Positions 282 through 55,810 of a stretch of DNA of 64,000 bases are shown piece by piece. Below the pieces are notes generated by a model, which searched no databases, was not told the origin of the DNA, and saw only the letters and a list, made by a program, of their open reading frames with translations. The DNA is from Bugula neritina. Taxonomy: Eukaryota; Animalia; Bryozoa. The number at the start of each line of letters is the position of its first letter. The first letter of the stretch is position 1. The translations under genes and the position numbers were made by a program. The DNA is taken from NCBI GenBank assembly GCA_964035545.1, contig OZ037765.1, positions 1,054,001 through 1,118,000 on the forward strand. Reading direction: 5' to 3'.

Positions 282-1385
282 CTTGGGTATACCTTGTAGA
301 TGCTGATAGTCTTTAAGAATTATAAGTAGCTCTTCTATTTTCATATAATTGTTGTTATGTAAATCTACATAGTTTCCATGAAGTAAATATCCATATACTC
401 CATGACAAAAAATAGACACGATCAAGAGAGAGCAGTGTTCTATGTTATCTAGTTCATCTCTAAATGTTTGTTTGAACTGTGGAAATACAGCGGAAGAATG
501 TAAACGTGAAATCTTGAGTTGTATTGATTTCACCTCAACTCCCACTGCTTCTAATGCTGTGGTCATTTCATTGGCAGCTCGTTTCTCTTGTTTGGGAAAA
601 CTGAGACCATTACCAGAAGAGCTCCCTGTGACACCTTCTAAGAATCCCGAAATAACAATACCATACATTTTAGCAAATCTTATTCCCTCACTAGGACGAG
701 GGATTATATAAAAAAAATTGGAACATGGTTCAACAATCCTCATCATTTTTTGTGTCATGGGTGTTTTGCAGAACTCTTTCACGTTATCTTCTTTATCAAG
801 ATAGCCTAGCAAGGAAGGGCTCACACCAAGCGCAGGACGCAAAAGTGGCTCCATAATGTCAACACAATCATTTTTGGCAATAATGTTAAAACGAGGCTCA
901 TCTGCATTAGCTCTAGGATCAAAGAACTCATGGAACAACTCTACGGCGTTGCTTTCTATAAATCGCTTGACTGAATTGTGTTTGCATTGTCGTAGGTTCC
1001 AAAGAAACCACAACTCAGCACTCAACACAATCAACTTCCATACCTCCTGGTCATTCTTATTTATAGGTTTTAATCCATCAGATGCATTACCGCTCTCTTC
1101 CATCAGTTTATTTAGTTCCCATTCGACTGAACTATAAATTTCTGGTAATGACCATCTTTCTCTTTCATCTTCCGATTGCCTTTCAGCATTTTTATACAAT
1201 TCAAAAAGATAGTCCGGAATAGAAACGATATCCTTAGCAACTATTGGAAGGTTTTTCAGAAAGTCAACATCTGTTTTTTCTATCATAGTGTTTAGTTTTG
1301 CCATAGAAGATGTTTTACTTCGCCGCAGAAATGTTTTGAATTTCTTAAACAATTTCTTCACTTCTCCTTCTGTTAGTTCAGCCAT
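282..1385 (-). CDS. Atypical caspase-like protein copy 1, first coding exon (368 aa: N-terminal domain plus p20 up to GIPK); last exon is outside the window
   Basis: ORF has the caspase p20 pattern CSLLIVSIFCHG...KIEELL...LQGIPK and ends at a phase-0 donor (aag|gtttgt) at the same position as in the three + strand paralogs; acceptor ctacag|gtgtcac at 1435/1434 as in the paralogs. Confidence 0.85.
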
Positions 1386-22857: not shown

Positions 22858-23153
22858 GTAGTTGTGATGGAAGCTTGTCAAGGAAGGATTTAAAGTTACA
22901 GACCTTCAGACAATGATTAATCCTTACGATAATGCAATGATTCTGATGTCTTGTGACAAAGGACAAGACACCCCTTTTGATGTTTTTAGCAGCTAGTAAA
23001 AAATATGTTGACAAGCAGAAGGAAAACCACAAAATAATTCAAGAAGATTTTAATGGTAAGCCTGTGATGTATCGTTCTGAACCCAGCAAAGATATCCAGG
23101 TTCCAAGTTCCATAAGCAAGCCATCTGAGTCTAATCAGCAAGACTCTCAGTAG
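22858..23153 (+). pseudogene. Decayed orphan caspase catalytic/p10 exon
   Basis: ttag|GTA GTT GTG ATG GAA GCT TGT CAA followed by a frameshifting deletion and stop, plus a second internal deletion; closest in sequence and upstream context to 38440-38817. Confidence 0.9.
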
Positions 23154-29563: not shown

Positions 29564-29898
29564 CAACAGTCCATAAAGCATAAACTAACAAAGGAATGTT
29601 CAACCATAGCAAGGACTGTTATAGTTATATTCATAAGGAAGAAGTGAAGTAGTTTACACCCTCACATATTCTCAGTGGTGTGGTGTTGGAAAGTTGTGGG
29701 AATTTTTATTAAGAAAACATTGATTAACTATCCTCACTTTTAAAAGTAAGTAAAAGTCATGAGCCTTCAATTTATTTTATACTGAAGTCATGAGTTGTAG
29801 TGATTCAAAGCTTTCTACCTGTAATAATAAATAATTAATATATCTGCAGGTGTCACTATCTAACTGAGTGTATCATTCTAAGACTACAAAACTAGAAT

Positions 29899-32625
29899 AT
29901 GGCTGATGAACTAACAGAAGGAGAAGTGAAGAATTTGTTTGGGGAATTCAAACAAATTCTGAGACAAGGTAAAACATTTTCTGCAGTGGCACTAAACGCT
30001 ATGATTGAAAGAACCAGTGGTTTATCAGCAGACCATAACTTTCTGAATAAACTCTGTGATGTTGCTAAGAATATAGATTCTATTCCGGACTATCTTTTCG
30101 CAAAGTATAAAACTGCCGAAAATCAACCGGAAGATGAAAGAGAGGGATGGTCATTACCGGAAATTTATAGTTCAGTTGAAGAGGAACTAAATGGACTGAT
30201 GACTAAGAGCCGTATTGCATCTGATGGAAGGAAACCTGGAAGTAAAAATGACAAAGAGGTATGGAAGCTAATTGTGTGGAGTGCTGAGTTGTGGTTTCTT
30301 TGGAACCTACAAAAATGCAAACACAATTCAGTCAAGCGATTTATAGAAAGCAACGCAGTAGAGTTGTTCCATGAGTTCTTTGATCCTAGAGCTGATAAAG
30401 ATGAGCTTCACTTTGATGTTCTTGCTGAGAAAGATTGTGTCGACATTATGAAGAAACTTCTGTGTCCTGAGCTTGGTGTGACCTCTTCCTTGCAAGAATA
30501 TTTTGATAAAAAAGGTAACGTGATAAGATTCTGTCAAAACTCCATGTCACAAGACATGATAAAGATCGTTAATCCACATTCAAAGAAGTTTTATATAATC
30601 CCTCGTCCTAGAAAGGAAAAAGGATTTGCTAAAATGTATGGTATTGTTGTTTGTGGATTCTGCAAACCAGACCAGGCTCCATTTTACGAAGCTGAGCAAC
30701 AAGCTGCCACAGCAATAGAGGACGCCTTTAAGGAAGTAGACATAGATATCATAGACACTAAGACTCACCCTCAAATCTTTGAGTCGGAAAATTTCTTTAA
30801 AGAGTTGCGTAAATGGATACGAGAAAAGCTAAAAGTTATTGAAAATCTTTGCTCTCTTTTAATTTTGACCGTTATTTGCCATGGAAAACACGGACATTTA
30901 GGACACAAAGTCGAAGGAAAAGAGCTGTATATGGCGATTGGAAAACTGTTTAAATTATTCAATGATAATGGTGGTTTAAAAGGAATACCCAAGGTTAGTA
31001 AAACATTTGCTTGCTAAGCTATTGTGTGTACTTGTGTGCAGGGGAGGGAAATAATATAGCCAGTAGTATGCACATATTACTTATAAGAAATTTGCATTTA
31101 AATCGGGGGGGGGGGGGGGGGGGGGGGATAAACACACACTTATTGTCAAGGTTGTAAGCTGTGAAGGTTCAACTCCCATTAACCTATTTTATGTACTTGT
31201 TGGCAGAACTATAAACACTTGACTAAGTTACAACAAAGAATACTATCACCATATTAATTAGTAGCTATCAATCATTCTGAGATCAACTCTCAGTTTAATC
31301 AAGCTGTTTGTCTACGCAGTCAGTTGTTCTGAGACCAACTCAGCTAGCCAAGCAACATAATTTTGAAAAAAACTGATAGTTTGCCAAGTCAAGCAAAATT
31401 GTTAATTGGCAGAAAAAATTATGTGCATTGTTTAGGCCAATGCACTGTGCCATTCCGTAACATTTAAATTTCGATCTACAGTATTTCAAATGTGCAATGT
31501 TTGCATACTTTCATCATATAGCATTTTATTATAGGCAATGGTTTGTTGGATCTGGAGTAATATGCTCATAATATTATAACTTATTTATCATCAATGTAGA
31601 ACAAAAGCTGCACTATGTTATACATATTACCATTTAGTTCTTACAGTATATAACCAGCTAAAAGCATTTATCAACCTGAAGTCAACCGACACCTTTTATT
31701 GCCTCTTGAAAAATTTTATCAGAATTCTTAAAATCATTTAGATTTTAGATATTAGGTGAAAATAAACAAATGTTATTACATGATTTTGTTAGGTTTCAAC
31801 AAATTGTAAAAAGTTGACCAAACTTTCAAGTTTAATGAAACTGCCTGTCTAAAGTCAAGTCACTAACTTATATAAAAAATTTTCTTTGACATCTCAGCTA
31901 CAAGAAATATCTGTGAAATAGCAACTGCTGGTCTATAGTCATGTCACTAACGTATTCTCACTTATTTTTATGTCCATAAAATATGTACTTCTAACTTTCG
32001 TTTTGACGTAAATTTAATAGTTTTCAAACTTGAGTGATTTTGACTATAGGGTGTTGAGATCATGCAAATGTGAGAATTTATATTAACCTATAACTTTCTA
32101 TTTCAACCAAATAAATAATATCAACAAGAATATATAATATTAATTATTAATTACTGAACTCCCCCCCCCCCCCCCCGTTTCTCTGCATGCAGCATCATAT
32201 TGTATTGCATTTTGGTGATATATTATATAGTCTATATGTGATCAGCTAAAAACTTTTCTTATTAGGTAGTTGTGGTAGAAGCTTGTCAAAAGTGCAAAAA
32301 AGAACTTGGGGATACAGATCTTGAGGGAATGATAAATCGTTATGAGGATGCAATGCTTCTGATCTCTTGCGACAAAGGTCAAAAAACCCCTGTAGATAAA
32401 AAGAACGGCTTTCTAATCAATCTGGCCGAAGAGCTTAAAATAGCAGGTGTTTCACAAACATTAGCAGATATGTTTTTAACAGCTAGTGAAAAATATGTTG
32501 AAAAGCAGAAGAAAAGAGGCTATACAGTTCAACCTGTGATGTTTCCTTCTGAACCCAGCAAAGATATCCTGATCCCAAAGTCCACAAGCAATCCAGATGA
32601 TTCTGATCAGCAAGACTCTCGGTAG
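29899..32625 (+). CDS. Atypical caspase-like protein copy 2; join(29899..30993,32266..32625), 484 aa
   Basis: Phase-0 intron aag|gttagt...ttag|gta joins ...ICHG...LKGIPK to VVVVEACQ (equivalent to caspase GKPKLFFIQACRG), followed by a p10-like DAMLLISC..G.....GFLINLAEEL...QPV..S...KDILIP. Confidence 0.9.
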
Positions 32626-34790
32626 TGACATCTTAAACTGTGTAGTTCACAGCATGCCCTTGCAAAAGACATCAAACTTCTTTTGAAATCAACCATTCAA
32701 TGTTACAGTGATAGCCCTCTATAATAAACCATCTACACCTATTATAACATGTAGGCCTACTGTGTTGTAAACTAGTGAAGTTGATCAAACTAATTTTAAT
32801 AAATGAGTTTGCGAGTTGATTGACTAAAATCTGCATAAATAATGGACTTTTTTGTAGCTATAGCAGAATAGTGTCTATGGACCACTACATTTCTGAGATT
32901 TTTTCTTGTGTTAATGATTACTATAGAATTACTTTATCTATTCACTTCAATATGCTATCATTTTATATATTATCTATGCTTATTATCACAGCCATTGTAT
33001 CACATTATGAATTATATAGGTCAAACTTCTAACTAATTCAAAGTTACTAACCCTCCATTGTTAATCTATAATATGAAAGAGCACCCTTCAAATAAAACAA
33101 AAACTATATACCTAAGCTAGAAACAAAATTTAAAAAGCATGTTGTGTATCTTTTTATGTTTTCTTGGAGACTTTCTGACATGTTACTTTTACCTGAATTT
33201 TTCATCAGATTAGATTTTTTCACGACAGCTAATTTTCTCAATTTGATTTATACTTCAGGTATAAAAGTTACTATAGATTTTATAAATACAGTTAGATTTT
33301 ATGGACACCATTGCATGCTTTCCATACTAAAATTTATTCTGATCCAACATAATTTCCTTAAAAAATTATTTTAGATGCCTAAACTTTATCACTTTAACAA
33401 GCCTTGCATTATTTGTCAACAACTTTCCAATTCCGAGCAGATAACTCTGAATAATATACTTGTGTAGAAATTACAAGTGGAAGTTTTAAAAATAAACAAC
33501 TCTTGATGCAGTAGAATTACACATTTTATTTCTTAGCTTCAAATTGATGCACTAAAAGCCACAAGGCTCTGCTGTATAACAAATACATTAATTTTTAAGG
33601 CACCTGTTTACAAACACACTCCAGTTTAATATAATTTTATGACAGACATAAACTTTTAAGAAAGACATATGCATATGTGTGTACTTGCATGGTCAATGAT
33701 GTCAACCTAGATTATCATATTTACTGCAAGATATGCAGGGAGTAAACTTCACATTACTAATTATGTATATTCTATGAGTATTTTGTAATGAAAGCTTCAG
33801 TTCTCTATAATCAAAGTTTCAACTGTTTACCATAAATCATGAGATTCATCAGAAAGATAAAGTAAAATTATTCAACAATAGTTTATTTATAGACTGACAC
33901 CAGAGTTGAGAAATAACATTCTGCTACAATACCTCACTGTGACTAGACATGAGAAAACTAACTTTGGTTCTCAATGTGGTGTATCCTTTGCTGCATAATT
34001 ACACTGTGACGTACTATTATTATCTCTGTAAGCCACGCCCACTATTTATTTCTATTTGCTATATATAGTCTGATAGTCTTAGGAAATTGACCAATCAGAG
34101 AATATTAAAATGTGCTACTCAGTGGAGACTGTCTGGCCTTTGGATAATGAAATGTCCATAAAATATTATAACCTAGCATATCATTTGGTAACTATAATAT
34201 AATATAGTATAATATAATTATATAATGTACCATATTATAATATAATATAATATAATATAATATAATATAATATAATGTACCATATTATAATATAATATAA
34301 TCTGACGGCCTGGGTGCAGACGGCGCTGAGTCATAGCCGACCCGGCAGCTCAGCCAGTGACATACTCTCAGACAGCTCTTACCCTCTCCACTCCAACCGT
34401 AGCAGTGAGTTCTGTTAGAGTTGTGTTCTTCCTGTCACTTTGTAGACTGAATATTCTCTGTTGGTATTTCTTAGTCTGAGAAAACAGTTTGCAAAGTTCT
34501 CATTCAACTTTTTTAAACTCCTTTTTGTAAACAAGAAGAGGGAAGACAACTACCAATAAATAAATATTTATACTACAATGATAAGGGGAGAGGGGGAAAA
34601 TTTGAAGACATTTTTATCAAATGTCAATTTTACAAAAAAAATTTCAAAGAACTCATTCAAATTTGTAATTTTTTTGTAAAATTGACATTTTATTAAAATA
34701 ACCCCCCCCCCCCGCCTCCCCCCTCCTGTTATTATGGTAGAATAGTATTTATTTATTGGTTGTTGTCTTCTCTCTTATTGTTATACTTGC
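32626..34790 (+). repeat. Segmental-duplication unit downstream of the caspase last exon
   Basis: Colinear high-identity copies at ~38818-41030, ~50419-52625 and partly ~21380-22770; each has a GC box, a CCAAT-like box, a (TATAA)n tract and a GC-rich island. Confidence 0.9.
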
Positions 34791-34843
34791 TATAAGCATG
34801 AAGCACCATGGTGACGCAATATTTTGCTGACATAATCTACATA

Positions 34844-37800
34844 TGTGACCAGTCGCGACAAAACCGGGGATGTGGCGGCGTTTATAAAGTGTAGTAAATG
34901 AAGGTTTAATTTGGAAATACTTAAATTTGAAATTAATTTCCAGTTTTTAGGTTTTGAACTTTTCTAATACAAAAAAATCCAAGGATTTCAAAAATCATAC
35001 TTTCGCAAGCATTTGATGATTCCTTCAGCTCCAAAATTGCATTTAAAGTTGGTAACTAAGGCATTCAATTTTTTAAATAATGAAAAAATTGCGAAGCTAT
35101 CAAATAAAGAAAGAAGACAATTTTAGTCATTTCCATAGCGTGAGATCTTGCAAATTTATTTTTTGTCAACTGAATTTAGTTTACACCTCTTTATTCGCAT
35201 TGTCAAAAGCATCGTATCTGAAATCGCAGGCTAGTTTTAGTTTTTCATCGTGCTCCATCCAAAGTTAGCTTTTAAGTTACTGAGCTGTTTTGCCCTTTGG
35301 TGATAAATGCTAAACTTAATCTTTATCTTTAGCGTTCAAGCTTGAAAATCACAACAATGCAGGTAATTATACTCAAAACCATCCTTTACGCTACTAACTT
35401 AGAATTGTTGCCAGGATTATTTGTAGTTATCAATTTATTAATATTCATACTATCGCTAGCCCTAGGACTGGAGTATGTCTATTCCTATTCTATACTACTA
35501 CTAGTAACTATTTAAATGACTCTCACTATGACTCACAGTTTGAGGTACGGTTAATCATAATGATAATCATAATGAATATCATTCATGATTTACTGATACT
35601 GGTATTTGGCAGTAAAACCAAATGTAGCTCATTACTATAACTATAAGTAATAATATTAATTAATAATTATAACTTCACTATTTGAGTCTGACTCTGAGTT
35701 TCGCCTTCGGTCTTAAAACTTGATATTTATACTGATAGTATTATATTTATTGATTTATTCTGTAGTTGATATTTAAATTTAAATTGGACTTATTCTTAGT
35801 AACTTTTAGTCTCTGTCTTAGATTTTGTGAATACAGTTACTGATTGCTATTAGCCTACTATTAGGCCTACTATTAGTATTAACATTAGGCCTACTAGTCA
35901 AACTATCGTTTACTTTTGTGATTTTTAAATTAGCTCAAAGTTTGATTTAAAATATAATGATAAAATATTTATCACATTATGCAGGCTTACAGTTACTGTT
36001 AAAACTCTATTGGTAATCCTATTTATATTGATAAAAGCATCACCTATAACCAAATTGAAATGGTAAATGTGATTAAATGTAAATGAGTATAATGATGAAA
36101 TATTAATGCGAGTTCATGGTGATTCTATAGTTGACTGACTTAGTTCTTCAGTAAGTTACTTGTAGTATTATTTAGTGAGTAGTAACACTAACTGAATGCA
36201 TAAATAGTCTAAACTTTTTAATTTCATTATAAAGGATGAGCAAAAGTTTATTCATATTTTGAAGTAATTTATTGAATTCAAATTGATTTTATAGTAAATG
36301 TCTTTAATATATTCAGTTGCATTTAGCTAGCTTTTTTACTCAATTAAATGCCTGAGTGGTTAATAGTTATCGAAAGACATTGCTTCAAAATTGCCAATTG
36401 CAGATATGCTAGATATTCAAGTGCATAATGTGTAATTTTACTGATAATACTATGTTAATATAGAATAATACGATATTCTGTACATTCTAGAAAGTGGACT
36501 TATGAGAGCATTAGAGTGAAGACTTATACCTACACAACTCTACTACCTATCAATCTAACACTTCTAATGTAGACACTCTGAATTTTGGCTTGCAAGGTTA
36601 TGGCTTCTGCTTATTTCATTCATAAAAAGGTTTGCAGTCTTTTAATGATGTGCTTGAAAATTTGCAACAATTTTTTTAATTTAAATTGTTCTGTTTAATT
36701 CAATAAATTTAAATGTTGATATAATGCAGGATGACAATTAACTGCTGCCATAATAGTACCACAAGAGTGTTTAACCAACTAAATTTTTATAATATGACTG
36801 CATATAATTTCTAATCAAGCTACCGTTTTCTTTTGTTATTTAAAAAAGTCAACATTGTACTTGCAGCTCTGGAATAGACAATAGATGGGTAGATTGGCAG
36901 AATGGATGGCAAGTAGCAGCATCTATAATTGCTAGAAAATCAGCTGATGATATAGATGAAGCTTTTTGCCACATACATAATGTTATGTGTCCATACTCTG
37001 TAAACTCATATTATGAAGACCAAGGAAGTAGAAAGATGAAAAGTGTGGTAAATTTATGTTGTGTGTGTGTGTCCTTTGTTGCCGAGATCGGTACTTCGGT
37101 CCTCCGAAACACCGATATGCCGATTCTCGGCATATCGGAATACCGAAGTACCGAAATGCCGGATTCGGCATTTCGGATCCCCGAAATGCCGATATTCGGT
37201 ATTTCGGGTCTCCGATCTCGGCAAACAAAGGAATGTCTTTGTCCTGCATGTATATAAAAGCCAGCGAGTTCCAGTATAGTTCAGTCTACTACTGGAGCTC
37301 GCTGGATAAAGACCATTGATTCACTCGGACTATACTACAATAAAGATTATCTACATTCTACCTTATTTCTCGCCTTGTTTCTCATACAAGCATGTAACAG
37401 CACTAGTTTCATTCACAATCCACAAAACTATCACAAAAGTGCCCTTTTTGCAAAAACCGTAGAAGCTACCTAATTTTCTTTTCTTGATTAGAGTTAATTC
37501 AAGCATAATGGTTGTATCCAGGTTGGATTTGTTACTGCATTTAATTATTTTTTTAAAATAATGTATTTGATGTTTTAAATGTGAATATTAATGCCCAATA
37601 AAACTCAAAAGTTCTAATCGCTGATTTTAAGTTTATATTTTCAACATCAATTACTAAATTTAGTTGCCATTAGAGATTATAAAAATATTTATGAATGAAT
37701 CTCGAATGATCTCATAATAGTCAAATGATTTTCTCATAAGTGTTCTACTCATTAAGCAATAACTATGAAACAGCACAGCTCAATAGCTGCAGTTCGATAT

Positions 37801-38400
37801 ATTACACAATATATTAGAGGAGAGGAAGATATTCAATGTATAACAGGAAGCAGCTGCCATTTTGTTTTATATGACTTCCTGCTGACTTGGATGCCTAATT
37901 TAAATATCTCAACACACAAATTTGCTGAGACATCCTCTTCTTTGCTGGAATTGTTGAACCTTTCAATCATTAAAGAAAGTAAAAAGCAAATTGACAAATA
38001 AATTTGACAAAAAGTTTGGCGGCCATATTTGACCTAATTTTATGTTGAGGCAACATAAAATTTAGTTTAACAGAAAGCCCAAACTTTCACAATTATTTTG
38101 ATACCAAATTTGTCACTATTCCTATTATACAAAGACCCGTTGCTAAGGCTTGTAAATTGTAAACAAATAATTCTCCACTTATTCTAGAGTTGCCAACTTT
38201 AAACGCGATTTTCTCGAAACAGTAATTTAGAAATTCTAGAAACGTTAAAGTTTTTAAATACTGATATCTCGAGTTCTATTTATGCTAGAGACTTCAAATA
38301 AAGTGCATAATGTTTGACAAAGTCTGCTCTATCAATCCATAGTAATAACTAGGTTTTCAACATTTTATATACATCCCTTGTTTTGTGGTGCCAGGTCACA
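34844..38400. mobile_element. 3.56-kb non-autonomous TIR DNA transposon
   Basis: Imperfect TIRs tgtgaccagtcgcgacaaaaccggggatgt / acatcccttgttttgtggtgccaggtcaca; the empty site ctacatatgatac is preserved in the paralogous segment near 22814-22826. TSD length (TA, ATAT or CATATG) is ambiguous because the site is palindromic. Confidence 0.85.
37072..37232. repeat. GC-rich nested palindrome (outer stem plus three inner hairpins)
   Basis: tcctttgttgccgagatcgg...ccgatctcggcaaacaaagga encloses ccgatatgccga/tcggcatatcgg, ccgaaatgccg/cggcatttcgg and ccgaaatgccga/tcggtatttcgg. Confidence 0.9.
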
Positions 38401-38439
38401 TATGATACTAAACTTTCCTTTGAGTTTCACACTTGTTAG

Positions 38440-38817
38440 GTAGTTGTGATAGAAGCTTGTCAATATTGCAAGGAAAGAGTTGAAGTTGCAGACCTTCAGA
38501 CAATGATTAATCCTTATGATAATGCAATGATTCTGATGTCTTGTGACAAAGGACAAGAAACCCCTTTAGATGAGAAGGATGGCTTTCTCATCTATCTGGC
38601 CGAAGAGTTTAAACAAGTAGGTTTTTCACAAACAGTCGCAGAGATGTTTTTAGCAGCTAGTAAAAAATATGTTAACAAGCAGAAGGAAATTCATGGGAAT
38701 GCTCTATTAGATTTTGATGGTAAGCCTAGGATGTATCGTTCTGAACTCAGCAAAGATATCCAGGTTCCAAGTTCCATAAGCAAGCCATCTGAGTCTAATC
38801 AGCAAGACTCTCAGTAG
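38440..38817 (+). CDS. Intact orphan caspase catalytic/p10 exon (125 aa); candidate alternative last exon of copy 2
   Basis: Acceptor ttgttag|GTA, phase 0, open frame VVVIEACQYCK...QQDSQ*, aataaa near 38994; no first coding exon between 32625 and 38440. Confidence 0.6.
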   Translation, partial: VVVIEACQYCKERVEVADLQTMINPYDNAMILMSCDKGQETPLDEKDGFLIYLAEEFKQVGFSQTVAEMFLAASKKYVNKQKEIHGNALLDFDGKPRMYRSELSKDIQVPSSISKPSESNQQDSQ

Positions 38818-41800: not shown

Positions 41801-42424
41801 GGGTTGCTTTTTGAAACCCAGAATGATTTTAGGTAAAACTGACGTATGTAAAGATGTCGCAGGTATTAATGGCACAAATGGAAAAGTAGGTAAAAATGGC
41901 ACACTGATGTTGAATTTATCCAAACTCATACCCCAAACTCTCCACCCCAACCCTTGGACCCCAAACCCCCACCTCCTAACTCAAACCCCCACCCCAAACT
42001 CTACTTTTTAAAAACCTTCTGGGCATCTCTTTGAACTTTTAATGGAGTTTCAATGGTGTTTCTCTAAGCTACCCCCTCAAAAAGAAAGAGCTAGATTCTT
42101 AACTTGACATGTTACCCATTGAACGCTTTGTTGAAAAGTTTTTAGAGGAATTACATGAGGATTTTATTGAGTTGGTTCACAATTCAGTAATGAAGTGATC
42201 TGAAATACTTTCCAATTGATGTATTGTTGGTGGTGTCCAGTAAAAATGGCGCAGGTAATGAAGGCACAAATGAAAAATTAGGTACAAATGGCACATTCTC
42301 AATAGTAAGATTTGGGGTGGGGTTGGGTGTTTGGGATAATTTGACAGCAGTGGGCTATTTTTACCTATTTTCCATTTGTGCCATTATTACCACTTTTACC
42401 TGTGCTATTCTTACTTAATATATA

Positions 42425-42570
42425 TATGTGTGTGCCCGCGTGTGTGTGTGTGTTTGTGTATGCGTGCATGTGTGTGGGTGCGTGTGTGTGCGTGTGCATG
42501 TACGTGTGCGTGTGTGTGCATGTGTGCATGTGTATGCGTGGGTGCGTGTCTGCGTTGAGTGTTGTGTGTA
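42425..42570. repeat. (GT/GC)n-type microsatellite
   Basis: Alternating purine-pyrimidine tract. Confidence 0.9.
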
Positions 42571-43325
42571 TAATATAGTTTTATAGTTTACCACTAAAAA
42601 GAGCTCATTGCAGGGCAGAGCAGAGTGAAAAAAAGTAGAGTAAGATAGAATTTGTTCAACTCTGGAACATAATAATATATTACTCCTTCCGGCTGACAAT
42701 ACATCTATATAGTAAATATGTTGTTTACTAGAATGCTAGCTGAGCTTCTAGCCAATAAAACTTATCATGAACCACAGAGAAACCTGTATTAATTATTTTA
42801 TTCCAGTTCTTAAGAATACCTACACAAAAAAGTTAAAATGGCTGCATACTTTAAATCGTGGATATAAATAACATTTAAGAGGTTTTTTGTTAGCTGTAAT
42901 TTATATACTATATATGCATAGATATTCACTAGACACCATAACATAATATAATATCATACACCGTATGATACATTATGTTGTATACATATTTACATATATC
43001 AAACATACAGATGGCAACAGGGTGTCTCAGTTTAGAAGCCTACTTTGTTGATATTAGAAGTTTTTTAACTTTTCTAAAAAGTTTTGTTTTGTACATGATA
43101 ATTTACGGGAATATATGTTGTAAACATCTAGCTGCTGTAATGTTACAAACTGGTTAGCAAATCTATCATTCTCTGCTTTGGATTATGCAATGACTCTATG
43201 GTTGTGGTTTGTATGAACTTAGGCAACTGTTTTTAAACATGGAATGAAAAATTCATTGCATAATGTGAAGCTTGGAAATAGTGATTAGAAAATAATTTTA
43301 ATTTGCTATAAACTGCTGTTGCTGG

Positions 43326-43445
43326 CCCTGAGGCCACCTATTAGACAGCCCTGAGGCCGCCTATTGGACAGCTCTGAGGCTGCCTATTGGACAGCCCTGG
43401 GGTCGCCCATTGGACAGCTCTGAGGCTGCCTATTGGACAGCCCTG
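43326..43445. repeat. 23-bp minisatellite (~5 units) upstream of caspase copy 3
   Basis: Same unit as 29467-29563 with one more copy. Confidence 0.95.
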
Positions 43446-43767
43446 CAACAGTCCATAAAGCATAAACTAACAAAGGAATGTTCAACCATAGCAACGACTG
43501 TAGTTATATTCATAAGGAAGTAGTGAAGTAGTTTACATGTTCTTGGCGGTGTGTTGGAAAGTTGTGGGAATTTCATATTAAGAAAATATTCATAAACTAT
43601 CTTCAATTTTAAAAGTAAGTAAAAGTCATGAGCCTTGAATTTACTTTATACTGAAGTCATGAGTTGTAGTGATTCAAAGCTTTCTACCTGTAACGATGAA
43701 TAATTAATATACCTGCAGGTGTCACTATCTACCTAAGTGTATCGTTCTAAGACTACAAAACTAGACT

Positions 43768-46700
43768 ATGGCTGAACTAACAGAAAAAGAAGTGAAGGAT
43801 TTGTTTGATGGATTCAAACAAATTCTGAGAAAAGGTGGAGAATTTTCTGAGGAGCCACTGAACACCATGATTGAAAGAACCAGTGGTTTATCAGCAGATC
43901 ATCACTTTCTGAACAACCTCCAAGATGTTGCTAAGAACATAGATTCTATTCCGGACTATCTTTTCACAAAGTACAAAGGTGCCGAGAGCCAACCGGCGGA
44001 GGGAGAGGGAGGGTTACTACCAGAACTTTATAGTTTGGTTGAAAAGGAACTAGACAACCTGTTAGAGAATAAAAGTTATCCTACATATGATCTGAAAAGA
44101 GATAGGGATAGGAATGACCAGGAGGTATGGGAGCTGATTGTGTTAAGTGCTGAGCTGTGGTTTCTTTGGAACCTACGAAAATGCAAACACAATTCAGTCA
44201 AGCGATTTATAGAGAGCAACACCGAAGATTTGTTCCGTGAGTTCTTTGCTCCTATTGCTGATGAGGATGATCCTCGTTTTGAGGTTCTTGCTGAGAAAGA
44301 TTGCGTCGACATTATGGAGAAAATTTTGTGTGATAAGCATGGTGTGAGCTCTTCCTTGCGAAAATATCTTGAAGACAAAGATAGGGCAAGAAAACTCTGC
44401 CAAAACTCCATGTCACAAAACATGATAAAGACTATTAATCCACATTCAAAAAAGTTTTATATAATCCCTCGTCCTAGTGACAGAAATAACTTTGCTAAAA
44501 TGTATGGTATTATTGTTTGTGGATTTTTAACATCAGACCAGGCTGATTTTTCTGAAGCTGAGCAACAAGCTGCCACGGCAATGGAGGACGCCTTTAAGAA
44601 AGTAAAAATAAAGATCATAAACACTAAAAATCACTCTCACATCTTTGAGTTAGAAGATTTTTTTACAGAGTTGTGTAAATGGGTAGAAGGTGAGCTAAGG
44701 GGTATTGAAAATGATTGCTCTCTGTTAATCTTAACCGTTTTTTGCCATGGACATTATGGACATCTGTCATACAAAGGAACTTCGCCGTGTATGAAGATTG
44801 AAGAACTGTTTATATCATTCAAAAAATTTAATGGTTTAAAAGGAATACCCAAGGTTAGTAAAATATTTGCTTGCTAAAATATTGTGTGTACTAATTGTGT
44901 GCAGGGGAGAGAAATTACTGATAAGAACCTTGCTTTTAGTGAGGGATAAACACTCACTGTAACAGCTTGATTAAAACAATGTATAGTAAACCATCAACTT
45001 TTCCACTACAGAATACCTTTCAAAACTTGACTGCCTGGTAGTATAGTAAAGGTTGTATAGGGTACACTTTCACTAACAGATTTTGTTGTACAAAAGTTCA
45101 CTCTACCTCATGTACTTTTGGACAAAACTAACACGCGTGCAGTTACAACAAAGAATACAATTTGTATGAATCACCCTGTCAGTAGCCATCACTCATTCTT
45201 AGATCACCTCTTGTCCATATGGTTTTGGTGACTAGTCAATATTCCGAAGGCCCATTGCTCCGAAGGCCCATTTGTAATGGATTTTAACAATCTAGTAATT
45301 ATATTGCATCACTATTATAATTGACCTGGTGTAACTTTTTGAATGCTGTTAAATGTTTTAATTATAGCTAAGCTCTTTGCATAGCTTTCTAATGCCTTAA
45401 GTATTGTAATTATAGCTAAGCTCTTAGCGTAGCGAATAGCGTAATGAATGTGAATTGCCCTTCCTATTTTTGTGCGTTTATAAAATACTGTAATAGTTTT
45501 TGTTGAGTTATGTTCCCCCCCCCCCCCGCCACTTTTTTGTAAATAATCTTTGATTAGTTTTGTGAGCCGAAAATCGACCGATTTCGGAGCCCGGAGGCTC
45601 AATTTCAGAAGGGCCTGTTCGATTTCGGACAGATCCTTTTGACTTCGGCCAATGGAACTCCAAATCTCGGCCGAGTTTCGGACACCCTAAGTGGTGGGAA
45701 ATTTTGTTGGTATATAAGTGGGATATTTTCCAGTGCTAAGTCAGTCTAACACTGAAGCTCACCCAAGAAGTATCTACAGGAGAATAAAGAAACTCATATC
45801 AAGAGTATTCAAAAGGCTTTCATTTATCAAAGCATAGTATAGGCATGCAGACTGCTTTAGTCTATTTTATCATAACCCACAAGTTTACTACATTGGTGAC
45901 AGCAGTGGGATGAAATAGACAAGCACGACAGGCAGCCATACTAAAAAAGACCAGAAAGAAGAAGAGGAAGAAGAAATGGAAGGAGAGGAGAGAGAGGAAG
46001 AATGTCTCACTATGGAGAAGCTTATCACCGCCCTCCGAGAAGTCAGTAGAGCCGGACAGGCAGCACCTGGAGACAGGTATTGCCTCAGGCCTCTGATTTT
46101 CCGATGCAAAGGAGACATTGAACAATTTATCATGGAGTTTGAAAAGGTAGCCACCCTTACCAAATAGCTGGCCCAGGTGCGCCTCCTTCAACTCCGAACT
46201 TGCTTAACTGGTCAAGCAAAGAGTTATGCTCTCGGACCTGACGTCGGCCACATCTTTCAGGCCCCCAGGTCTCGTTTAAGGTTGACTGCCCATGCTGCAA
46301 AAGATCGCCTGCGAACCATATGCAGGGACAGCAAGACATCACTCCAGGACCACGCCAATGCTATAGAGGCGCTGACACAAGTGGCCCATGGTAATGACAA
46401 CTCCGAGGCGCGAAGAGGCGTCGTGTACGAGGCCTTCTTTCACACCGTTAACAATCCTGGGTTACAACAGTACTACCTGGCAGCCAAAGTCACCACCATC
46501 GAAGAAGCCCTGGCCCTGGGAAAGGCATACTATCAGATAGAGAGACCCCAAGAGGCAAATTCCACAGCCAATCAGGTTGATGAGCAACCTGAAGCTACGA
46601 AGCCAGATCCGTCGAGCCCGCAGATTGTAACCGCCGCTACTGCTACCCCTTCACCGGAGCGACTCACCATAATGGACATGCTGAAAGATCTCCAGACAGA

Positions 46701-49700
46701 GATAAAAAGTGTGGGAGCTGTTCTGTCTCAGGTCCAGGGTGGAAGCGAGGTGGTTGTTGCTTATTACAGCAACACTCTTGCAGCCGCCGAAAAGAACTAC
46801 TGCACCACTAGGAAGGAACTCCTAGTAGTAGTCAGGGCGGTCAAGCACTTTCGGCCATATCTGTATGGGAGAACGTTCAGATTATGAACGGACCATGCGT
46901 CTCTGATATGGCTGTGTAAACGTGCTGAGCCCTCGAGCCAGGTGGCTCGCTGGCTGGAGATTCTTGCTGAGCTCTCCTACCGGCTGGAGCACCGTGCCGG
47001 TAAGAAGCATGAGAATGCCGACAGCATGAGTCGCCGGCCAGTAGAGGACACAGTTGGGAGACGTTAACGTCTATAATTTGGAGCACGGTCATCTTCGGCC
47101 CGAAACACAGTTAGACGATGTCCTGACACTTTGTGCTAACCCCACACTGTACCAAAATGTCAAGGAGCTATGTTGACTGCAGGAGACACTACCTGGAGCG
47201 GTAGCTGACATCTTCCAGGCCAAGAAAGAAGGCCAGCAACAGCAAGGGGATGTTGAGTTCCAATTTCTCTGCCGCCATTAGAAGTCTCTCCAGATCCACC
47301 CGGATGGCCTCCTGACAATGACACTTGTAGCAAACAATCGTCAACAGGAGCGAGATCGCGCCATTTGCCCATGCGCTCTCCGTCAGGAACTCATCTGGGA
47401 TACCCATAACAAAGCTCATGTTGGAGCCAGCCGGGTCATCAGATGCCTGCAGATGCGATGGTATTGGCCCGGAATGACCAGGGATGTGCGACTAAGAATC
47501 CGGCAATGCGAGGTCTGTCAAGCCAGCAAACACGGACGCCCCACCGAAACCACGGGTCGGCGCCGGCTATACACCGGCCAGCCCTGCCAGGTCGTGGCCG
47601 TGGACCTTGTAGGACCAATACTGACGACTGATAGAGAGAACACCTAGATTTTGGTGTTGACAGACCACTTTACACGGTGGGCGGACGCTCTGGCCATCCC
47701 AGACGCATCAGCCCCCAGGGTAGCTCGGGCCCTTGACCAACAAGTGTTTTGCTATTTTGGCCTACCAGAACAGATACAACTTGACCAGGGTGCCCAATTC
47801 CAGTCCCAGTTGATGAAAGACCTCTGCGGGATATGGGGGGTGAACCAGAATCGAACCACCCCATATCACCCCCAAGGAAATGAGGTGGTAGAAAGAAATA
47901 ATCGAATGCTGGGTGACGCTCTCTAGAGCCTCCTTTTGGGGAGAAGTCAAGAGGAGTGAGACGTCATGTTGCCACAAATCATGCGGGTGTATTGAAGTAC
48001 ACCTCACTCTAGCAAGAGACGCCGAACCTGCTGAAGTTGGGCTGAGAAACCAGAGTTCCTGAACATCTCATGTATCACGTTCTGCTTATTGATCATAAAG
48101 TAATCTCAGGCTAAACAATCACAAGTAGGCAACACGCATGCCACCCACAGAGCAATAATATAGCAAGAACTTAAACTAAATTGTGAGTGAAATTAATGAT
48201 ATTCTTAGTGAGGATGCCTGTGTGTACTAATTTTCGGACTAATGGACCTTCGGAACAATGGACCTTCGAAGCAATGGGCCTTCAGAATATTGCTCCGTTC
48301 CCTATGGTTTCATTTTTTTATTTTGGTGCAATATATAGAGTAGTATACCTATATAACTGTTGTGTTAATTACTAAATGTGAACTACTAGCTAATATATGA
48401 ATTATCTGGAATAATATTCTAATTTTCATGAATTTGTTTGGGGCAAAAATAACAGTAATTGTAAGAAATTTGCCAGTGCAACTAGTGCACTGAACTTAGT
48501 CACATCAGCTAGGCTAGTCTACCCAGTCTTGTGAAGGAGTTTAGCCTTGTGTGGTGAGCTGGTATTGTCTTGTTTATTGACTCACCCATGTGTGAATAGT
48601 AATTCTTACAGCAAACTTTATTACAATTTGACCAGATTTGTGAATTAGTAGTTAGCCAGCAGCTGAAGGAGAAGCAATGAGAAGAAACAATAAATAGCTT
48701 ATAATTAGTACGTGTTTTTATCAGGTTGATGGGTAAAGGAACACAGGTTAGCTTTTTATGTTGACTCATATGCAATCTGTTTACTCAGCATTGTTGTTGT
48801 GTTGGTTTTATAGCAGTAAATAATATCATTTTATATTATACTCTATTGCAAATATTTATTATAATCACAATTGGAATATAATAAATACATACATCAGTAA
48901 AGCCATCCTCATACAAAATTCATCTTTAATAACAGAGTTTTGGAGGTCTTATAAAAGAAACTTACAGTAATACATTAATAATAGGCATTATCTTTAAAAT
49001 GAATACTCATCAATAAAATATTTTCCAAACAGCAACAAATATATAGAGAAAATGCAAAATTAATAAGTTAATGCAGATCAAAGGAATTTATGTCATTAAG
49101 ATACATGTAGATATACAAATTTATTTAAATATAAATATATTTCAATAACATTCAAACAAATTGCACATGAAATATATGTATTGCACTAAAATAAATAAAT
49201 GTGGAAAGTGTCTAACTGGCATAACACCGTTCATATTTACAATCAGCGGAGTGATGCCAGTTTTGTGAAACTTATAATAGTTTGCCAAGTCAAGCAAAAT
49301 CTTCTTTTTTACTACAGTGGATCAGACAGAAAAAATCTACTATTGATTGAGTTTAATACACAATATGTGCATCGCTTGGGTCAACGAATGTCCCATTAAC
49401 ACTATAACTTAAGTTAAGTTGCATTTAAATTTGATCTATTACAAACATAAAATGCTTGCACATCATTTTATTAGGTAATGGTTTGTTAGATTTGGAGTTA
49501 TATGCTCATAACATTATAGCTAATCTCTAGAGTACCAATGAAGAGCAAAGGCTGCACTGTTATACAGTAGCTACTATCTAACTCTTACAGTATCTAATAA
49601 AAAAATTTATTAACCAGAAGTTATTTGACAATTTTTATTGTTTCTCAAAAAAAAGTTAGGTTAGGCTTATATAGGGGAAAATAAACAAATGTTATTAAAT

Positions 49701-50418
49701 GATTCTGCTAGGTTTCAACAACCTTTAGAATGTTGACAAAATTTTCAAGATTAATGGAGCCACTTGTCAAGTCACTAACCTGCGAATAGTTAGCTGTCAT
49801 TATATTTATGTCTAAACATATTTTCTTCTAACTTGAGCTATGAAGTAAATTCAACGGTTTTAAAACTTGAGTGACTTTGGCTAGGATTTGAACCAAATAA
49901 ACAATATATAATATTGATAGGTATTGAGCTCTTGACTTGCCCCTGCATGCAGCGTCACGGTGATGCAATATTTTGCTGGTATAATCTACATGTGATCATA
50001 AACTTTACTTTGAGTTTCATACTTGTTATAGGTAGTTGTGATAGAAGCTTGTCAAAATTGCAAGGAAGGAGTTGAAGTTGAAGATCTTCAGACAATGATA
50101 AATCGTTATGATGATGCAATGCTTCTGATCTCTTGCGACAAAAATCAAGAAGCTACTCCATATAAAAATACTGGCTTTATCATCAACATAGCCGAAGAGC
50201 TTAAAAAAGCAGGGTTTTCAAAAACAGTAGCAGAGATGTTTGCAACAGCTAGAACAAAATACATCAAAGAGCAGAAGGAAGAAATGCGCCAAATTGGATA
50301 TAGTGAAGATGATTTTATAGCTGAACCTGTGATGTATCGGTCTGAACCCATCAAAGGTATCCAGATTCCAAGTTCCATAAACAATCCAAATGATTCTGAT
50401 CAGCAAGACTCTCAGTAG
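43768..50418 (+). CDS. Atypical caspase-like protein copy 3; join(43768..44853,50032..50418), 490 aa
   Basis: Same exon structure as copy 2: ...FCHG...LKGIPK|VVVIEACQNCK...; intron enlarged by nested transposons. Confidence 0.9.
45226..48302. mobile_element. Second copy of the foldback element (as 7033-7530), interrupted by a Gypsy insertion
   Basis: Left arm 45226-45272 and right part 48085-48302 match 7033-7530; exact 8-bp TSD tatggttt at 45218-45225 and 48303-48310. Confidence 0.85.
45273..48084 (+). mobile_element. Truncated, internally deleted Ty3/Gypsy LTR retrotransposon
   Basis: 5' LTR TGTAAT..ACTACA (45273-45892) with TATA and aataaa; PBS tggtgacagcagtgggat (tRNA-Leu-like) at 45894; gag-like frame fused directly to RNase H (GAVLSQ..AYYS..EKNYCTTRKELL..FRPYLYGR); integrase HHCC and core (VDLVGP, DQGAQF, GNEVVERNN) with stops; protease, RT and 3' LTR missing. 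Confidence 0.92.
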
Positions 50419-53400
50419 TGACATCTCAAACTGTCTAGTTCACAGCATGCTGTTGCAAAGGACATCAAACTTTTTTTGAAATTAACCATTCAATGTTACA
50501 GTGATAGCACTTTCTAGTAAACCATTAACACATATTATAGCATGTACTGTGTTGTAAACTAGTAAAGTTAAAAGTTGATCAAACCAATTTTGATAAATAA
50601 GTTTGCAAGCTGATTGACCAAAATCTGTATAAATAATGGATTTTTTGGTAGCTTATATAGCGGGGTAGTGTTTATGGACCACTACATTTCTGAGATTTTT
50701 TCTTGTGTTAATAATTACTATAGAATTACTTTCTCTGTTAACTTCAATATGCTATCATATTTTATATGACATTTATGCTTATTATCACAGCCATTGTATC
50801 ACATTATGAATTATAGACCAAACTTCTAACTAATTCAAAGTTACTAACTCTCCTTTGTTATTTTACAATATGAAAGAGCACCCTTCAAATAAAACAAAAA
50901 CTATATACCTAAGCTAGAAACAAAATGTTGTGTATCTTTGTATGTTTTCTTGGAGACTTTTTGACATGTTATCTTTACCTGAATTTTTCATTAGATCAGA
51001 TTTTTTCACGACAGCTAATTTTCTCAATTTGATTTGTACTTCAGGGATGCAAATTATTATATTTTCTAAATACAGTTAGATTTTATGGACACCATTGCTC
51101 TCCATACTAAAAGTTATTCTAATCCAATAAAATCTCCTTTAAAAATTATTCTTGATGTTTAAACTTTATCACTTTAACAAGCCTTGCATTATTTGTCAAC
51201 AACTTTCCGATTCCGAGCAGATAACTCTGAATAATATACTTGTGTGGAAATTACAAGTGGAAGTTTCAAGAATAAACAAGTCTTGATGCAGTAGAATTAC
51301 ACATTTTATTTCTTCGTTTCAAGAATTGATGCATTAAAAGCCACAAGGCTCTGCTGTATATAACAAATACCATTAATCTATATAGCACCTGTTTTACAAA
51401 CATACCTCACTTTTAATACTTTTGTGATGGACATAAACTTTTAAAAAGACATATGCATATATGTGTGTACTTGCATGGTCAATAATGTCAACCTAGGTTA
51501 TTATAATTACTGCAAGATATGCAGGGAGTAAACTTTACATCAGTACTAATTACGTATATCCTACGAATATTTTTGTAATGAAAGCTTCAGTTCTCTAACA
51601 AAATTTCAACCTTTTACCATAAATCATGAGATTCATCAGAAAGATAAAGTAAAATTATTCAACAATAGTTGATTTATAGACTGACACCAGAGTTGAGAAA
51701 TGACATTCTGCTACAATACCTCACTGTGACTAGACATGAGAAAACTAACTTTGGTTCTTAATGCGTGTATTCTTTGATGCATAATTACACTGTGACGTAC
51801 TATTATTATCTCTGTAAGCCACGCCCACTATTTATTTCTATTTGCTATATATTCTGATAGTTTTAGGAAATTGACCAATCAGAGAATATTAAAATGTGCT
51901 ACTCAATGGAGACTGTCTAGCCTTTGGATAATAAAAAGTTCTTAAAATATTATACTCCAGCATCTCATTTGCTTATATAACTATAATATAATATAATATA
52001 ATGTAATATAATATAATACAACATAATATAATATAGTATAACATAATATGATATAATATACTATAATGTACCATAACATAACATATAATATAATATAATG
52101 TACCATAATATAATGTAATATAATATAATGTAATGTGACGGCCTGAGTGCAGACGGCGCTGAGTCATAGCCGACCCGGCAGCTCAGCCAGTGACGGACTC
52201 TCAGACAACTCTTACCCTCCCCACTCCAACCGCAGCAGTGAGTTTTGTTGGAGTTGTGTTCTTCCTGTCACTTTGTGGACTAAATATTCTCTGTTGGTAT
52301 TTCGTAGTTTGAGAAAACAGTTTGCAAAGTTCTCATTCAACTGTTTTAAACTCCTTTTTTTGTGAACAAGAAGCGGAAGACAACTACCAATAAATATATA
52401 TTTATTCTACAATGATAAAGGGGAGAGGGGGGTGAAATTTGAAGAAATTTTAATCAAATGTCAATTTTACCAAGAAAATTTAAAAGTTCTCATTCAAAGT
52501 TTTAAATTTATTTGTAAAATTGACATTAGATTAAACTGTCTTCAAATTCTACCCCCTGTTATCATTGAAGATTAAATATTTTTTATTTATATTTATTGGT
52601 TGTTGTCTTCTCTCTTATTTTTATACTAGAAGTCATGTGACCATGTTTAGTAGACAAAGCATGTGTTGTCTGTGCCCTAGTCTACCAATTTTATCATCAA
52701 GATTCAAGTGTAATAAAATATGATTTGTGTGCACCTGCAATACTGATGCTATGTGTAGATCACTGTGAAATACCTAGGAAGGTTCATGCAAGTAATTGCT
52801 TACTCAGCTTTGCTACGTGATATTTCATCATCTAATATTATCTGTATTCTTTTGACTTATGATGTAATTTCCTGTATCTATGAGCATGCAAACTTTTAAT
52901 GCATGGAGACCGTAAACTGATAGTCTTAGGAAATCGACCAATCAGAGAATATTAAAATGTGCTACTCAGTGGAGACTGGTTATATAGTCTTATGGCAATA
53001 AAAAGTCCATAAAATATTATACTCCAGCATCACATTTGTTAACTATAATATAATATAACATAAAATAATATGATATAATTTAAAAAAATAATATGATATA
53101 ATTTATAATATAATATAATATGATATAATATAACATAACTTAATATAATATAGCATAATGTAATATAATATATAATGTAATATAATATAATATGATATAA
53201 CAATTTAGTATTATATAAGCCATTACTCTTCACTAGGTTTCAAAGCACTGAAATGCACAGGCCATAAATACCAACAGCTGCATGTGGCTTCTATACCTTT
53301 GACACTTGACAGATTACATAGTCTCAACAATGAATATCTAGGACACATAGTTCTTGGCATTAGCCCAAAATCTAAGTTTTCAAGGTATTTGGACCAATAG

Positions 53401-53838
53401 GGTTCAGTCCTCATTTTAAACAATTTATATAGCCTGTGCTCATATATCTGGCTATATGCAAAAGTTCCTGGTTAGGATAAGATGTTATTCAATGATATTA
53501 TTCCTCTATCAAGCTGTATATACAGAATAAAATAACACAGAGCACTGCTCAACCACAATAACAGCTCATAAGGAAGTAGTGATAAACCATTACTAACTAT
53601 AGGTTACACCCCCACATATTCTCAGTGGTGCCGTGTTGGAAAGTTGTGGGAATTTTATTGATTAACTATTCCTCGCTTTCAAAAGTAAGTATTAACAAAG
53701 AGCCTTGAATTCATTTTATACTGAAGTCATGAGTTGTAGTGATTCAAAGCTTTCTACCTGTAACAATGAATAGTTAATATACCTGCAGGTGTCACTATCG
53801 AAATAAGTGCCTCATTCTAAGACTACAAAACTTGAGGT

Positions 53839-55810
53839 ATGGATGAACTGAGAGCAGAAGAAGTGAACAATTTGTTTGGGGAGTTCAAACAAATTCTGAG
53901 ACAAGGTAAAACTTTTTCTGCGGTGACACTAGGCGCTATGATTGAAAGAACCAGTGGTTTATCAGCAGACCATGACTTTTTGAACAACCTCCAAGATGTT
54001 GCTAAGAACATAGATTCTATTCCGGACTACCTTTTCGCAAAGTATAAAATTGCTGAAAATCAACCTGAAGATGAAAGAGAGGGATGGTCATTACCAGAAA
54101 TTTATAGTTCGGTTGAAGAGGAACTAAATGGACTGGTGACTAAGAGCCGTAATGCATCTGATGGAAGGAAACCTGAAAGTAAGAATGACGAAAAGGTATG
54201 GATGCTAATTGTGTGGAGTGCTGAGTTGTGGTTTCTTTTCAACCTCCAAAAATGTAAACATGATTCAGTGAAGCGATTTATAAAAAGCAACGCTATAGAG
54301 TTATTCCATGAGTTCTTTGATTCCAGAATAGAGAGCAATGAGCCCCATTTTGATGTTCTTGCTGAGAAAGATTGTGTCGACATTATGGAGAAACTTTTGT
54401 GTCCTGAGCTTGGTGTGAGCCTTTCCTTGCAAGAATATTTTGATAAAATAGGTAACGTGAAAAAGTTCTGTAAAACACTCATGAGACAAAATATGATAAG
54501 GATCGTTAAGCCACATTCAAAGAAGTTTTATATAATCCCTCGTCCTAGTGACAGAAATAACTTTGCTAAAATGTATGGTATTATTGTTTGTGGATTCTTC
54601 AAACCAGATCAACCTTTATTTTTCAAAGCTGAGCAACAAGCTGCCACCGCAACAGAAGATGCTTTAGATGAAGTAAATATAGATATCATACACACTAAGA
54701 CTCACCCTCAAATCTTTGAGTCGGAAAATGTGTTTACAGAGTTGCGTAGATGGGTAGGAGATAAGCTAAGTGGTATCGAAAATCGTTGCTCCCTTTTAAT
54801 TTTAACCATTCTTTGTCATGGAAAACACGGAAATTTAGCACACAAAATCAGAGGAAGTTGGCTGTATATGAAGATCGAAGAATTGCTCAAATTATTCAAA
54901 ACATTTGGTGGTTTAAAAGGAATACCCAAGGTTAGTAAAGTACTTGCTTGCTAAGCTATTGTGTGTACTTGTGTGCAGGGGACTTGTGTGCGAGAGAATT
55001 AATATAGCCAGTAGTATGCACATATTACTGATAACAAAGTTGCATTCAAATGGGGGGAATAAACACACACTTATTGTAAAGCTTGTAAACTGTGAAGGTT
55101 CAACTCCCATTAACCTATTTTATGTACTTGTTGGCAGAACTAACACACTTGACTAAGTTACAACAAAGAATACTATCACCATATTAATTAGTAGCCATCA
55201 ATCATTCTGAGATCAACTCTCAGTTTAATCGAGCTGCTTGTCAAGTCACTAACAGTCAAGTCATGTATTTACAACCTCAAAAATATAATGTACTTTTAGC
55301 TCCAGCTTTGCATAAATTTAATAGTTTTAAAACTTGAGCAATTGAATTGATAGATATTGAATTCAAGATTTGTTCTCCTTGCATGAAGCATCACAATGAT
55401 GCAATACTTTGTTGATATAATCTACATGTGATCATAAACTTTACTTTGAGTTTCACACTTGTTAGGTAATTGCGATAGAAGCTTGTCAAATGTGCTGGGT
55501 TGGGTCTGAAGGTGCAGATCTTCAGAAAATGATAGAGAATTATGACGATGCAATGCTTCTGATCTCTTGCGCCAAAGATCAACAAACCTATGCAGATGAG
55601 ACGAACGGCTTTCTAATCAATCTGGCCAAAGAGCTTGAAAAAGCAGGTTTTTCACAAACACTAGCAGAGATGTTTTTAACAGCTAGTGAAAAATATATCG
55701 AACAGCAGAGGGGAGAAGGTAGGACAGTTCAACCTGTCATGTTTCGTTCTGAATCCAGCAAAGAAATCCTGATTCCAAGGTCCATAACTGGTTCTGGTTC
55801 CCATCAGTGA
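53839..55810 (+). CDS. Atypical caspase-like protein copy 4; join(53839..54930,55466..55810), 478 aa
   Basis: Same structure: ...LCHG...LKGIPK|VIAIEACQMCW...; 535-nt phase-0 GT-AG intron. Confidence 0.9.

Follow-up and report, generated by a model that had tools for sequence, protein, structure and literature searches.

Caspases are defined by their specificity for Asp, and the locus described here raises the question of whether proteins of caspase fold can lose that trait and remain proteases. It lies in a 64,000-nucleotide stretch (positions 1,054,001-1,118,000 of a 35.6-Mb contig) of the 216-Mb assembly of the bryozoan Bugula neritina. This stretch, of AT-rich base composition, is called the window below. 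The cluster contains four intact two-exon genes, of which A, B and C stand head-to-tail on the + strand (29.9-55.8 kb) and D lies on the - strand at the window start, together with a spare last exon, itself intact, and the frameshifted relic of another. Six-frame searches of the whole genome found no further exon-1 or exon-2 copies of the family beyond the cluster. An earlier note on this DNA had described an 'expanded family' amplified in tandem. Tandem amplification was borne out by the duplicated copies and flanks in the window; the expansion amounts to just four genes and a spare exon, amid at least 179 other exon matches to Peptidase_C14. The reading favoured here, with slightly better than an even chance of being right, is that these are lineage-specific descendants of caspases in which the catalytic dyad was kept and the Asp-binding pocket lost, and that they are active proteases without Asp selection at P1.

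Fold, catalytic dyad and S1 pocket

Searches and structure predictions were run exon by exon, and the S1 residues were mapped from one structural anchor together with sequence and profile alignments. The AlphaFold2 (AF2) model of exon 1 had a predicted local distance difference test score (pLDDT) of 65-86 over residues 245-365 and was poor for residues 1-240. For the C-terminal ~130 residues of this exon, the first 36 Foldseek matches were all caspases, mostly large-subunit chains. VIA-align matched the same part to caspase-11, -4, -1, -2 and -3 (Z 11-12, root-mean-square deviation ~3.0 Å, 120 residues), and all 50 entries listed were caspases. Model residues 235-365 were placed on residues 154-278 of caspase-1 and 37-156 of caspase-3, the latter a superposition that the earlier note had proposed. 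A large-subunit profile widened with distant homologues matched Protein Data Bank (PDB) sequences of ancestral caspase-3/6/7 (E 0.001) and of many caspase-1 chains (E 0.014 upward); profiles of whole exon 1 or exon 2 before widening matched nothing among PDB sequences. As modelled, the C-terminal part of exon 1 has the caspase large-subunit fold, and the fold assignment made earlier is upheld by these structural and profile matches.

The model of exon 2 (pLDDT 54) follows the expected order of strand, strand, two helices and strand. Its best fold matches were all caspase chains, many of them small subunits, and were weak (Z 4.2-4.7). When the caspase part of exon 1 and the product of exon 2 were predicted together as two chains, the score was 0.26, which is under threshold and weighs neither for nor against. 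In the Peptidase_C14 search proposed earlier, the Pfam model did not match exon 1, and on two last exons it matched weakly (E 0.02-0.03) and below the cut-off (best 14.8 bits against 21.4), with exons scored apart, which lowers the scores.

CHG is present in all four genes, and the second member of the dyad is a Cys seven residues past the position aligned with caspase-1 K278. Motif scan, open reading frame (ORF) list and splice-site reading agreed with the earlier description of CHG in every first exon and of a catalytic-position Cys, as EACQ, in every last exon. Residue K365, at the end of exon 1, corresponds to caspase-1 K278, so that the Cys of EACQ, seven residues on, corresponds to Cys285 and the Glu takes the position of Gln283. 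From the N-terminus, the proteins would consist of a helical domain, a large-subunit part ending CHG...GIPK and, past a phase-0 intron in the gene, beta-4 (carrying EACQ) followed by the small-subunit part. The intron is in phase 0 in all copies, with the donor CCCAAG|GTTAGT (GTTTGT in D) and the acceptor (T)TAG|GT, and separates ...GIPK from the four aliphatic residues that precede EACQ.

In caspases the basic pocket that binds Asp is made up of Arg179, Gln283 and Arg341; para- and metacaspases have Leu, Asp and Asp/Glu at these positions (PMC2064784). The latter agrees with the earlier statement that an acidic residue two before the Cys is typical of para- and metacaspases. The caspase pentapeptide QACxG is absent from the family, in which EACQ is followed by a variable residue in 7/7 full last exons. 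The Glu that replaces Gln283 is invariant and, by the structural anchor, fixed in place, as had been claimed.

For the 179 position, a HMMER alignment to ancestral caspase-3/6/7 sets the caspase Arg against Tyr (A), Ser (B), Phe (C) and Pro (D). The distance to it from the end of strand 1 is nine residues, the same as in caspase-3, and the 179 loop is free of Arg in every copy. Phe had been read here before; the loss of Arg stands, and by the profile alignment the column falls one residue later. The 341 loop holds no Arg in A, B, C or the spare exon, whichever alignment is used, and that of copy C holds no basic residue at all. An ungapped alignment gives Val/Leu/Pro/Ala at 341, backed by the conserved Ser-x3-Gly spacing and by the paralogue L014 (see below), in which, as in caspase-3, the Arg comes nine residues past the Ser. 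MAFFT opened a gap, and the L014 Arg then fell against Lys/Lys/Asn/Thr. Of the earlier Val/Leu/Pro/Ala assignment, the absence of Arg from these four loops is retained; the column is uncertain by a few residues, and in D it may be Arg. One part of that alignment failed: its four first-exon and four last-exon strings were taken to be from the same four genes, and the sets differ, FPKQEKRAA being from D, outside the range assigned to the family. By alignment, all three Asp-binding residues are lost in A, B and C.

Para- and metacaspases have a conserved Asp six residues past the 179 column. In the family an acidic residue is present in every copy three positions past that column, and most copies have Asp/Glu one or two residues past the ungapped 341 column. 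These residues may fit an acidic pocket. Since para- and metacaspases carry acidic residues at the corresponding pocket positions (PMC2064784), an acidic pocket that accepts Arg or Lys is possible in the family. Glu283 should repel Asp, and together with the acidic residues past 179 and 341 it would favour Arg or Lys at P1.

The N-terminal ~230 residues of exon 1 are predicted to be helical (AF2 model, low confidence). They matched nothing in Pfam, PDB sequences or Atlas clusters. Their conservation extends beyond the family to more distant metagenomic homologues. The linker past the Cys is ~8 residues shorter than in caspase-3. It contains an invariant Asp-Leu, with the Asp 11 residues past the Cys at the end of GDTD, EVAD, EVED, EGAD or PRAD. 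In position and in appearance this stretch resembles the intersubunit cleavage site of caspases, and it is therefore plausible that ordinary Asp-specific caspases would cut it and activate the family in trans.

Relatives, divergence and competing readings

Four distant paralogues in the same genome (L014, L011, L012 and L013) were found with the family profile (E 5e-7 to 4e-9), and all four share its phase-0 intron position. The canonical triad of L014, joined to the same intron, indicates that the pocket was rewired within this lineage, and the combination of L014 (Arg, QACQ, Arg) with L011 (Arg179, EVCQ) points to stepwise loss of the triad inside it. On this evidence the family descends from caspases that had the canonical triad. 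A further homologue, P0027, passes the Pfam C14 cut-off and also matches the family profile. Judged from these sequence relationships, the family is a side branch, small and highly derived, with kinship to the ankyrin-caspases. L011 has, in addition, ~190 residues inserted between the Cys and strand 5, and its long acidic tail is rich in Ser, Glu and Gly.

Among 5.8 billion proteins searched, the close relatives were only ORF-style calls on Joint Genome Institute (JGI) metagenome contigs. An exon-2 relative is the NCBI hypothetical protein EB796_011340 [Bugula neritina] (104 aa). In a published B. neritina cluster (L009; GCA_010799875.2, VXIV02001713.1:168754-189068), exons 1 (370-373 aa) and 2 are annotated as separate hypothetical proteins, so that the family is invisible to protein-level surveys. 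That cluster is of like make-up, with an orphan last exon that has an internal stop and an inverted D-type gene. One metagenome exon 2 shares 98% identity with the exon 2 of copy C, and the best exon-1 match reaches 84%. On these comparisons the window belongs to B. neritina or a sibling species, and the cluster differs between lineages. A metagenome scan with the exon-2 alignment gave no confirmed locus. Genome-wide, the six-frame exon matches to Peptidase_C14 number at least 179, with many clustered on C1 (33-35 Mb), C6 and C7, from which the genome is judged to hold a very large caspase repertoire. The collection of papers searched returned none on EAC-type caspases or bryozoan caspases.

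Column entropy within the family was lowest (0.4-0.7) in beta-1, beta-3 with CHG, beta-4 with EACQ, and beta-5, and highest (1.6-1.8) in loops L2, L3 and L4, in keeping with the earlier note's observation of variable substrate loops. In caspases these three loops shape the substrate groove, and their fast diversification suggests an arms-race function, for example in immunity or cell death. Among A, the spare exon, B and C, the ratio of nonsynonymous to synonymous substitution rates (dN/dS) was 0.5-0.7 for exon 1 and 1.0-1.4 for last exons. Last exons are 80-82% identical, against 90-92% over 2.1 kb of 3' flank, and between A and B identity is 81% in exon 1 and 95% over 1.1 kb upstream; exon divergence is about twice that of the flanks. 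Exons that diverge faster than their flanks are a pattern known from immune gene families. Third codon positions have diverged as much as first and second positions, which makes homogenised flanks (gene conversion sparing the exons) as likely as positive selection alone. The flanks were also considered as a genome-wide transposon, and this was rejected, full-length copies being confined to the cluster.

Frameshifting indels occur at 7-11 per kb per pair in the flanks and at 0 in the exons. After the observed divergence, a frame stayed open by chance in a fraction of 0.04-0.07 of random-substitution trials. Nine of the 10 exons are open, and splice sites are intact in all. Such intact frames despite the divergence imply that the copies, the spare exon included, have been maintained as open frames through a divergence that was either driven or tolerated.

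One alternative is that the proteins keep the fold as non-cutting regulators or decoys. They would bind to ordinary caspases or sequester inhibitors made by pathogens, in the way that cFLIP acts on caspase-8, and the dyad would be a historical legacy or serve binding alone. The loss of three Asp-binding residues, the exon-2 dN/dS near 1, a relative that has lost its His and the very many ordinary caspases available for regulation are all as this explanation would have them. However, His-Gly and EACQ are invariant in the four genes and the spare exon and are kept in nearly all relatives, the strands that bear the dyad are the least variable, and known decoys such as cFLIP lack the dyad. The decoy explanation is considered doubtful, though a serious contender.

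That the genes encode ordinary Asp-specific caspases whose pocket residues have been misaligned is quite improbable. The loop alignment is uncertain, the closest folds are true caspases, and copy D has both Arg and Lys in its 341 loop; but the position of Glu283 follows from an ungapped structural anchor seven residues off, the 179 loop of every copy and the 341 loop of A, B, C and the spare exon lack Arg (with C devoid of any basic residue there), and the paralogue with the canonical triad, L014, aligns readily. A decaying cluster of unexpressed copies is highly improbable. It would account for one relic exon, a retroelement remnant in one intron, dN/dS near 1 and the fact that the runs holding the locus are DNA, with no RNA evidence. 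Against it stand the open frames and intact splice sites, the absence of exon frameshifts where the flanks have many, a stop expected in 93-96% of random histories, the conserved catalytic core and the orthologous intact copies in B. neritina DNA. Membership of the paracaspase/metacaspase lineage, to which the acidic residue two before the Cys would point (PMC2064784), is scarcely credible and was rejected, since the Foldseek and VIA-align matches, the best PDB sequence matches and the nearest genomic relatives (QAC-type ankyrin-caspases sharing the intron) are all caspases and domain searches found no death or Ig domains.

For active cysteine proteases that no longer choose Asp at P1, the following points have to be set on the other side. 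In the D-type relative P0008 (L003, JGI 3300003318; from B. neritina metagenome DNA), CCG replaces CHG, so that the catalytic His is lost, while the last exon retains EACQ. The exon-2 model is poor (pLDDT 54, Z <5) and cannot place loop residues. Uncertainty over the 341 column spans up to three residues, and D and D-type relatives carry Arg two residues before it. The putative linker site has Leu at P1', which is unusual among caspase sites. The dN/dS values near 1 also fit relaxed constraint. Finally, the four runs with the locus are genomic DNA contigs that span the intron, RNA-labelled runs of the species matched next to none of its sequence words, and no splice junction was seen.

A more specific reading joins several of these elements and is tentative. 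The S1 pocket would be a convergent acidic one, made up of Glu283, the Asp/Glu of the 341 loop and the acidic residue that is invariant where helix 1 starts; the proteases would cut after Arg or Lys, like para- and metacaspases, and would be switched on by ordinary Asp-specific caspases through the linker Asp. On this view the hypervariable loops, and exons that differ more than the flanks do, would be signs of a protease module of colonial bryozoans that is diversifying for immunity or allorecognition, and the spare last exon would allow the active-site half to be swapped.

To our knowledge, shifts of P1 specificity inside the true caspase lineage are almost unknown, and bryozoan cell-death and immune systems are essentially unstudied. 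One genome here holds a natural series, from L014 with the canonical triad, through L011 with Arg179 and Glu283, to the window genes with all three residues changed, which could show the rebuilding of a caspase pocket. If the window genes are active, a protease of new specificity would act downstream of, or beside, the large bryozoan caspase repertoire.

Layout of the cluster

Coordinates are collected in the table. Gene D is the most divergent copy, with 51-57% identity to A-C in exon 1. The spare last exon belongs to a 2.6-3 kb duplicated unit made up of a last exon plus 3' flank, and the relic last exon is likewise followed by the family's usual 3' flank. All four genes share a conserved stretch (85-92%) of ~113-120 bases directly 5' of the ATG, probably a 5' untranslated region or core promoter.

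The intron of gene B is 5.2 kb long and contains a degraded remnant of a long terminal repeat (LTR) retroelement (~45900-48000, + strand), which is GC-rich (53%) and has its pieces in different broken frames. A (TG/CA)n microsatellite lies at 42376-42700, between the spare exon and gene B. An 18-base tandem repeat is found near 61.3-61.7 kb (61258-61844), with open frames on both strands. A ~140-base repeat in the 3' flank, at 34160-34300 of the window (positions 1459-1602 of 32700-34790), occurs in tandem arrays on many chromosomes, which marks it as a dispersed satellite or miniature inverted-repeat transposable element (MITE).

Table. Exons, conserved stretches and retroelement pieces of the cluster, and distant paralogues. 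Positions are those of the window unless a contig label is given.
Feature	Position	Strand	Description
Gene A exon 1	29899..30993	+	365 aa; CHG 30877-30885; ends ...GIPK; donor GT at 30994
Gene A last exon	32266..32625	+	119 aa + stop; begins at strand beta-4; EACQ 32278-32289; then small-subunit part
Spare last exon	38440..38817	+	125 aa + stop; intact; own acceptor site; EACQ; without own exon 1
Gene B exon 1	43768..44853	+	362 aa; CHG 44743-44751
Gene B last exon	50032..50418	+	128 aa + stop; EACQ 50044-50055
Gene C exon 1	53839..54930	+	364 aa; CHG 54814-54822
Gene C last exon	55466..55810	+	114 aa + stop; EACQ 55478-55489; 341 loop without basic residue
Gene D exon 1	282..1385	-	368 aa; CHG 407-399; longer 179 loop
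Gene D last exon	G000:C1:1053112-1053540 (L004:9112-9540)	-	outside window, 460 bases before window start
Relic last exon	22858..23150	+	acceptor and EACQ retained; frame broken after 11 codons; remaining pieces in other frames
Conserved upstream stretches	29778-29898, 43647-43767, 53717-53838	+	
Conserved upstream stretch	1386-1509	-	
RNase H piece	46177-46884	+	gene B intron
Integrase zinc-finger piece	47318-47644	+	gene B intron
Integrase core piece	47651-47923	+	gene B intron
Paralogue L014	G000:C3:1662500-1669500		ankyrin repeats; Arg179, QACQ, 341-loop Arg; HRN motif; exon 2 passes C14 cut-off
Paralogue L011	G000:C9:6745000-6752000		ankyrin repeats; Arg179 kept; EVCQ at active site
Paralogues L012, L013	G000:C7		QSC; Gln/Lys-rich low-complexity insert after His

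Comparison with known systems

With animal caspases (MEROPS C14A; caspase-1, -2, -3 and -6) the family shares the large-subunit fold as modelled, the His-Gly after beta-3, the Cys ending beta-4, the order of secondary structure in the small-subunit part and an Asp in the linker past the Cys. It differs in having Glu for Gln283, Tyr/Ser/Phe/Pro for Arg179 and no Arg341 in A-C, in reading EACQ where caspases have QACxG, in its shorter linker and in scoring below the Pfam C14 cut-off. Where those caspases have a CARD or DED, the family has a helical N-terminal domain of 230 residues. The ankyrin-caspase paralogues are alike in the phase-0 intron between ...IP(K/L) and beta-4 and in a Y-x-I-P lead-in to beta-1; L011 and L014 carry ankyrin repeats in contrast to the orphan helical domain of the family.

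With MALT1 and the metacaspases (C14B) the family shares the acidic residue two positions before the Cys and the hydrophobic character of the 179 column. They are neither the closest fold nor the closest sequence match, and the family lacks their death or Ig domains in domain searches. Because the family derives from QAC-type caspases, any likeness to para- or metacaspases would be convergent.

Like cFLIP and other pseudo-caspases, the window genes appear to have taken the caspase fold away from Asp-directed proteolysis, as lineage-specific duplicates of true caspases. Unlike them, they conserve both Cys and His, one or both of which pseudo-caspases have lost; decoys of the cFLIP type are without the catalytic dyad. 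Drosophila Dronc (PFCRG) also has a residue other than Gln two before the Cys, and its P1 preference is relaxed, with Glu accepted as well as Asp. Dronc keeps both arginines, whereas in the window family all three pocket residues are changed.

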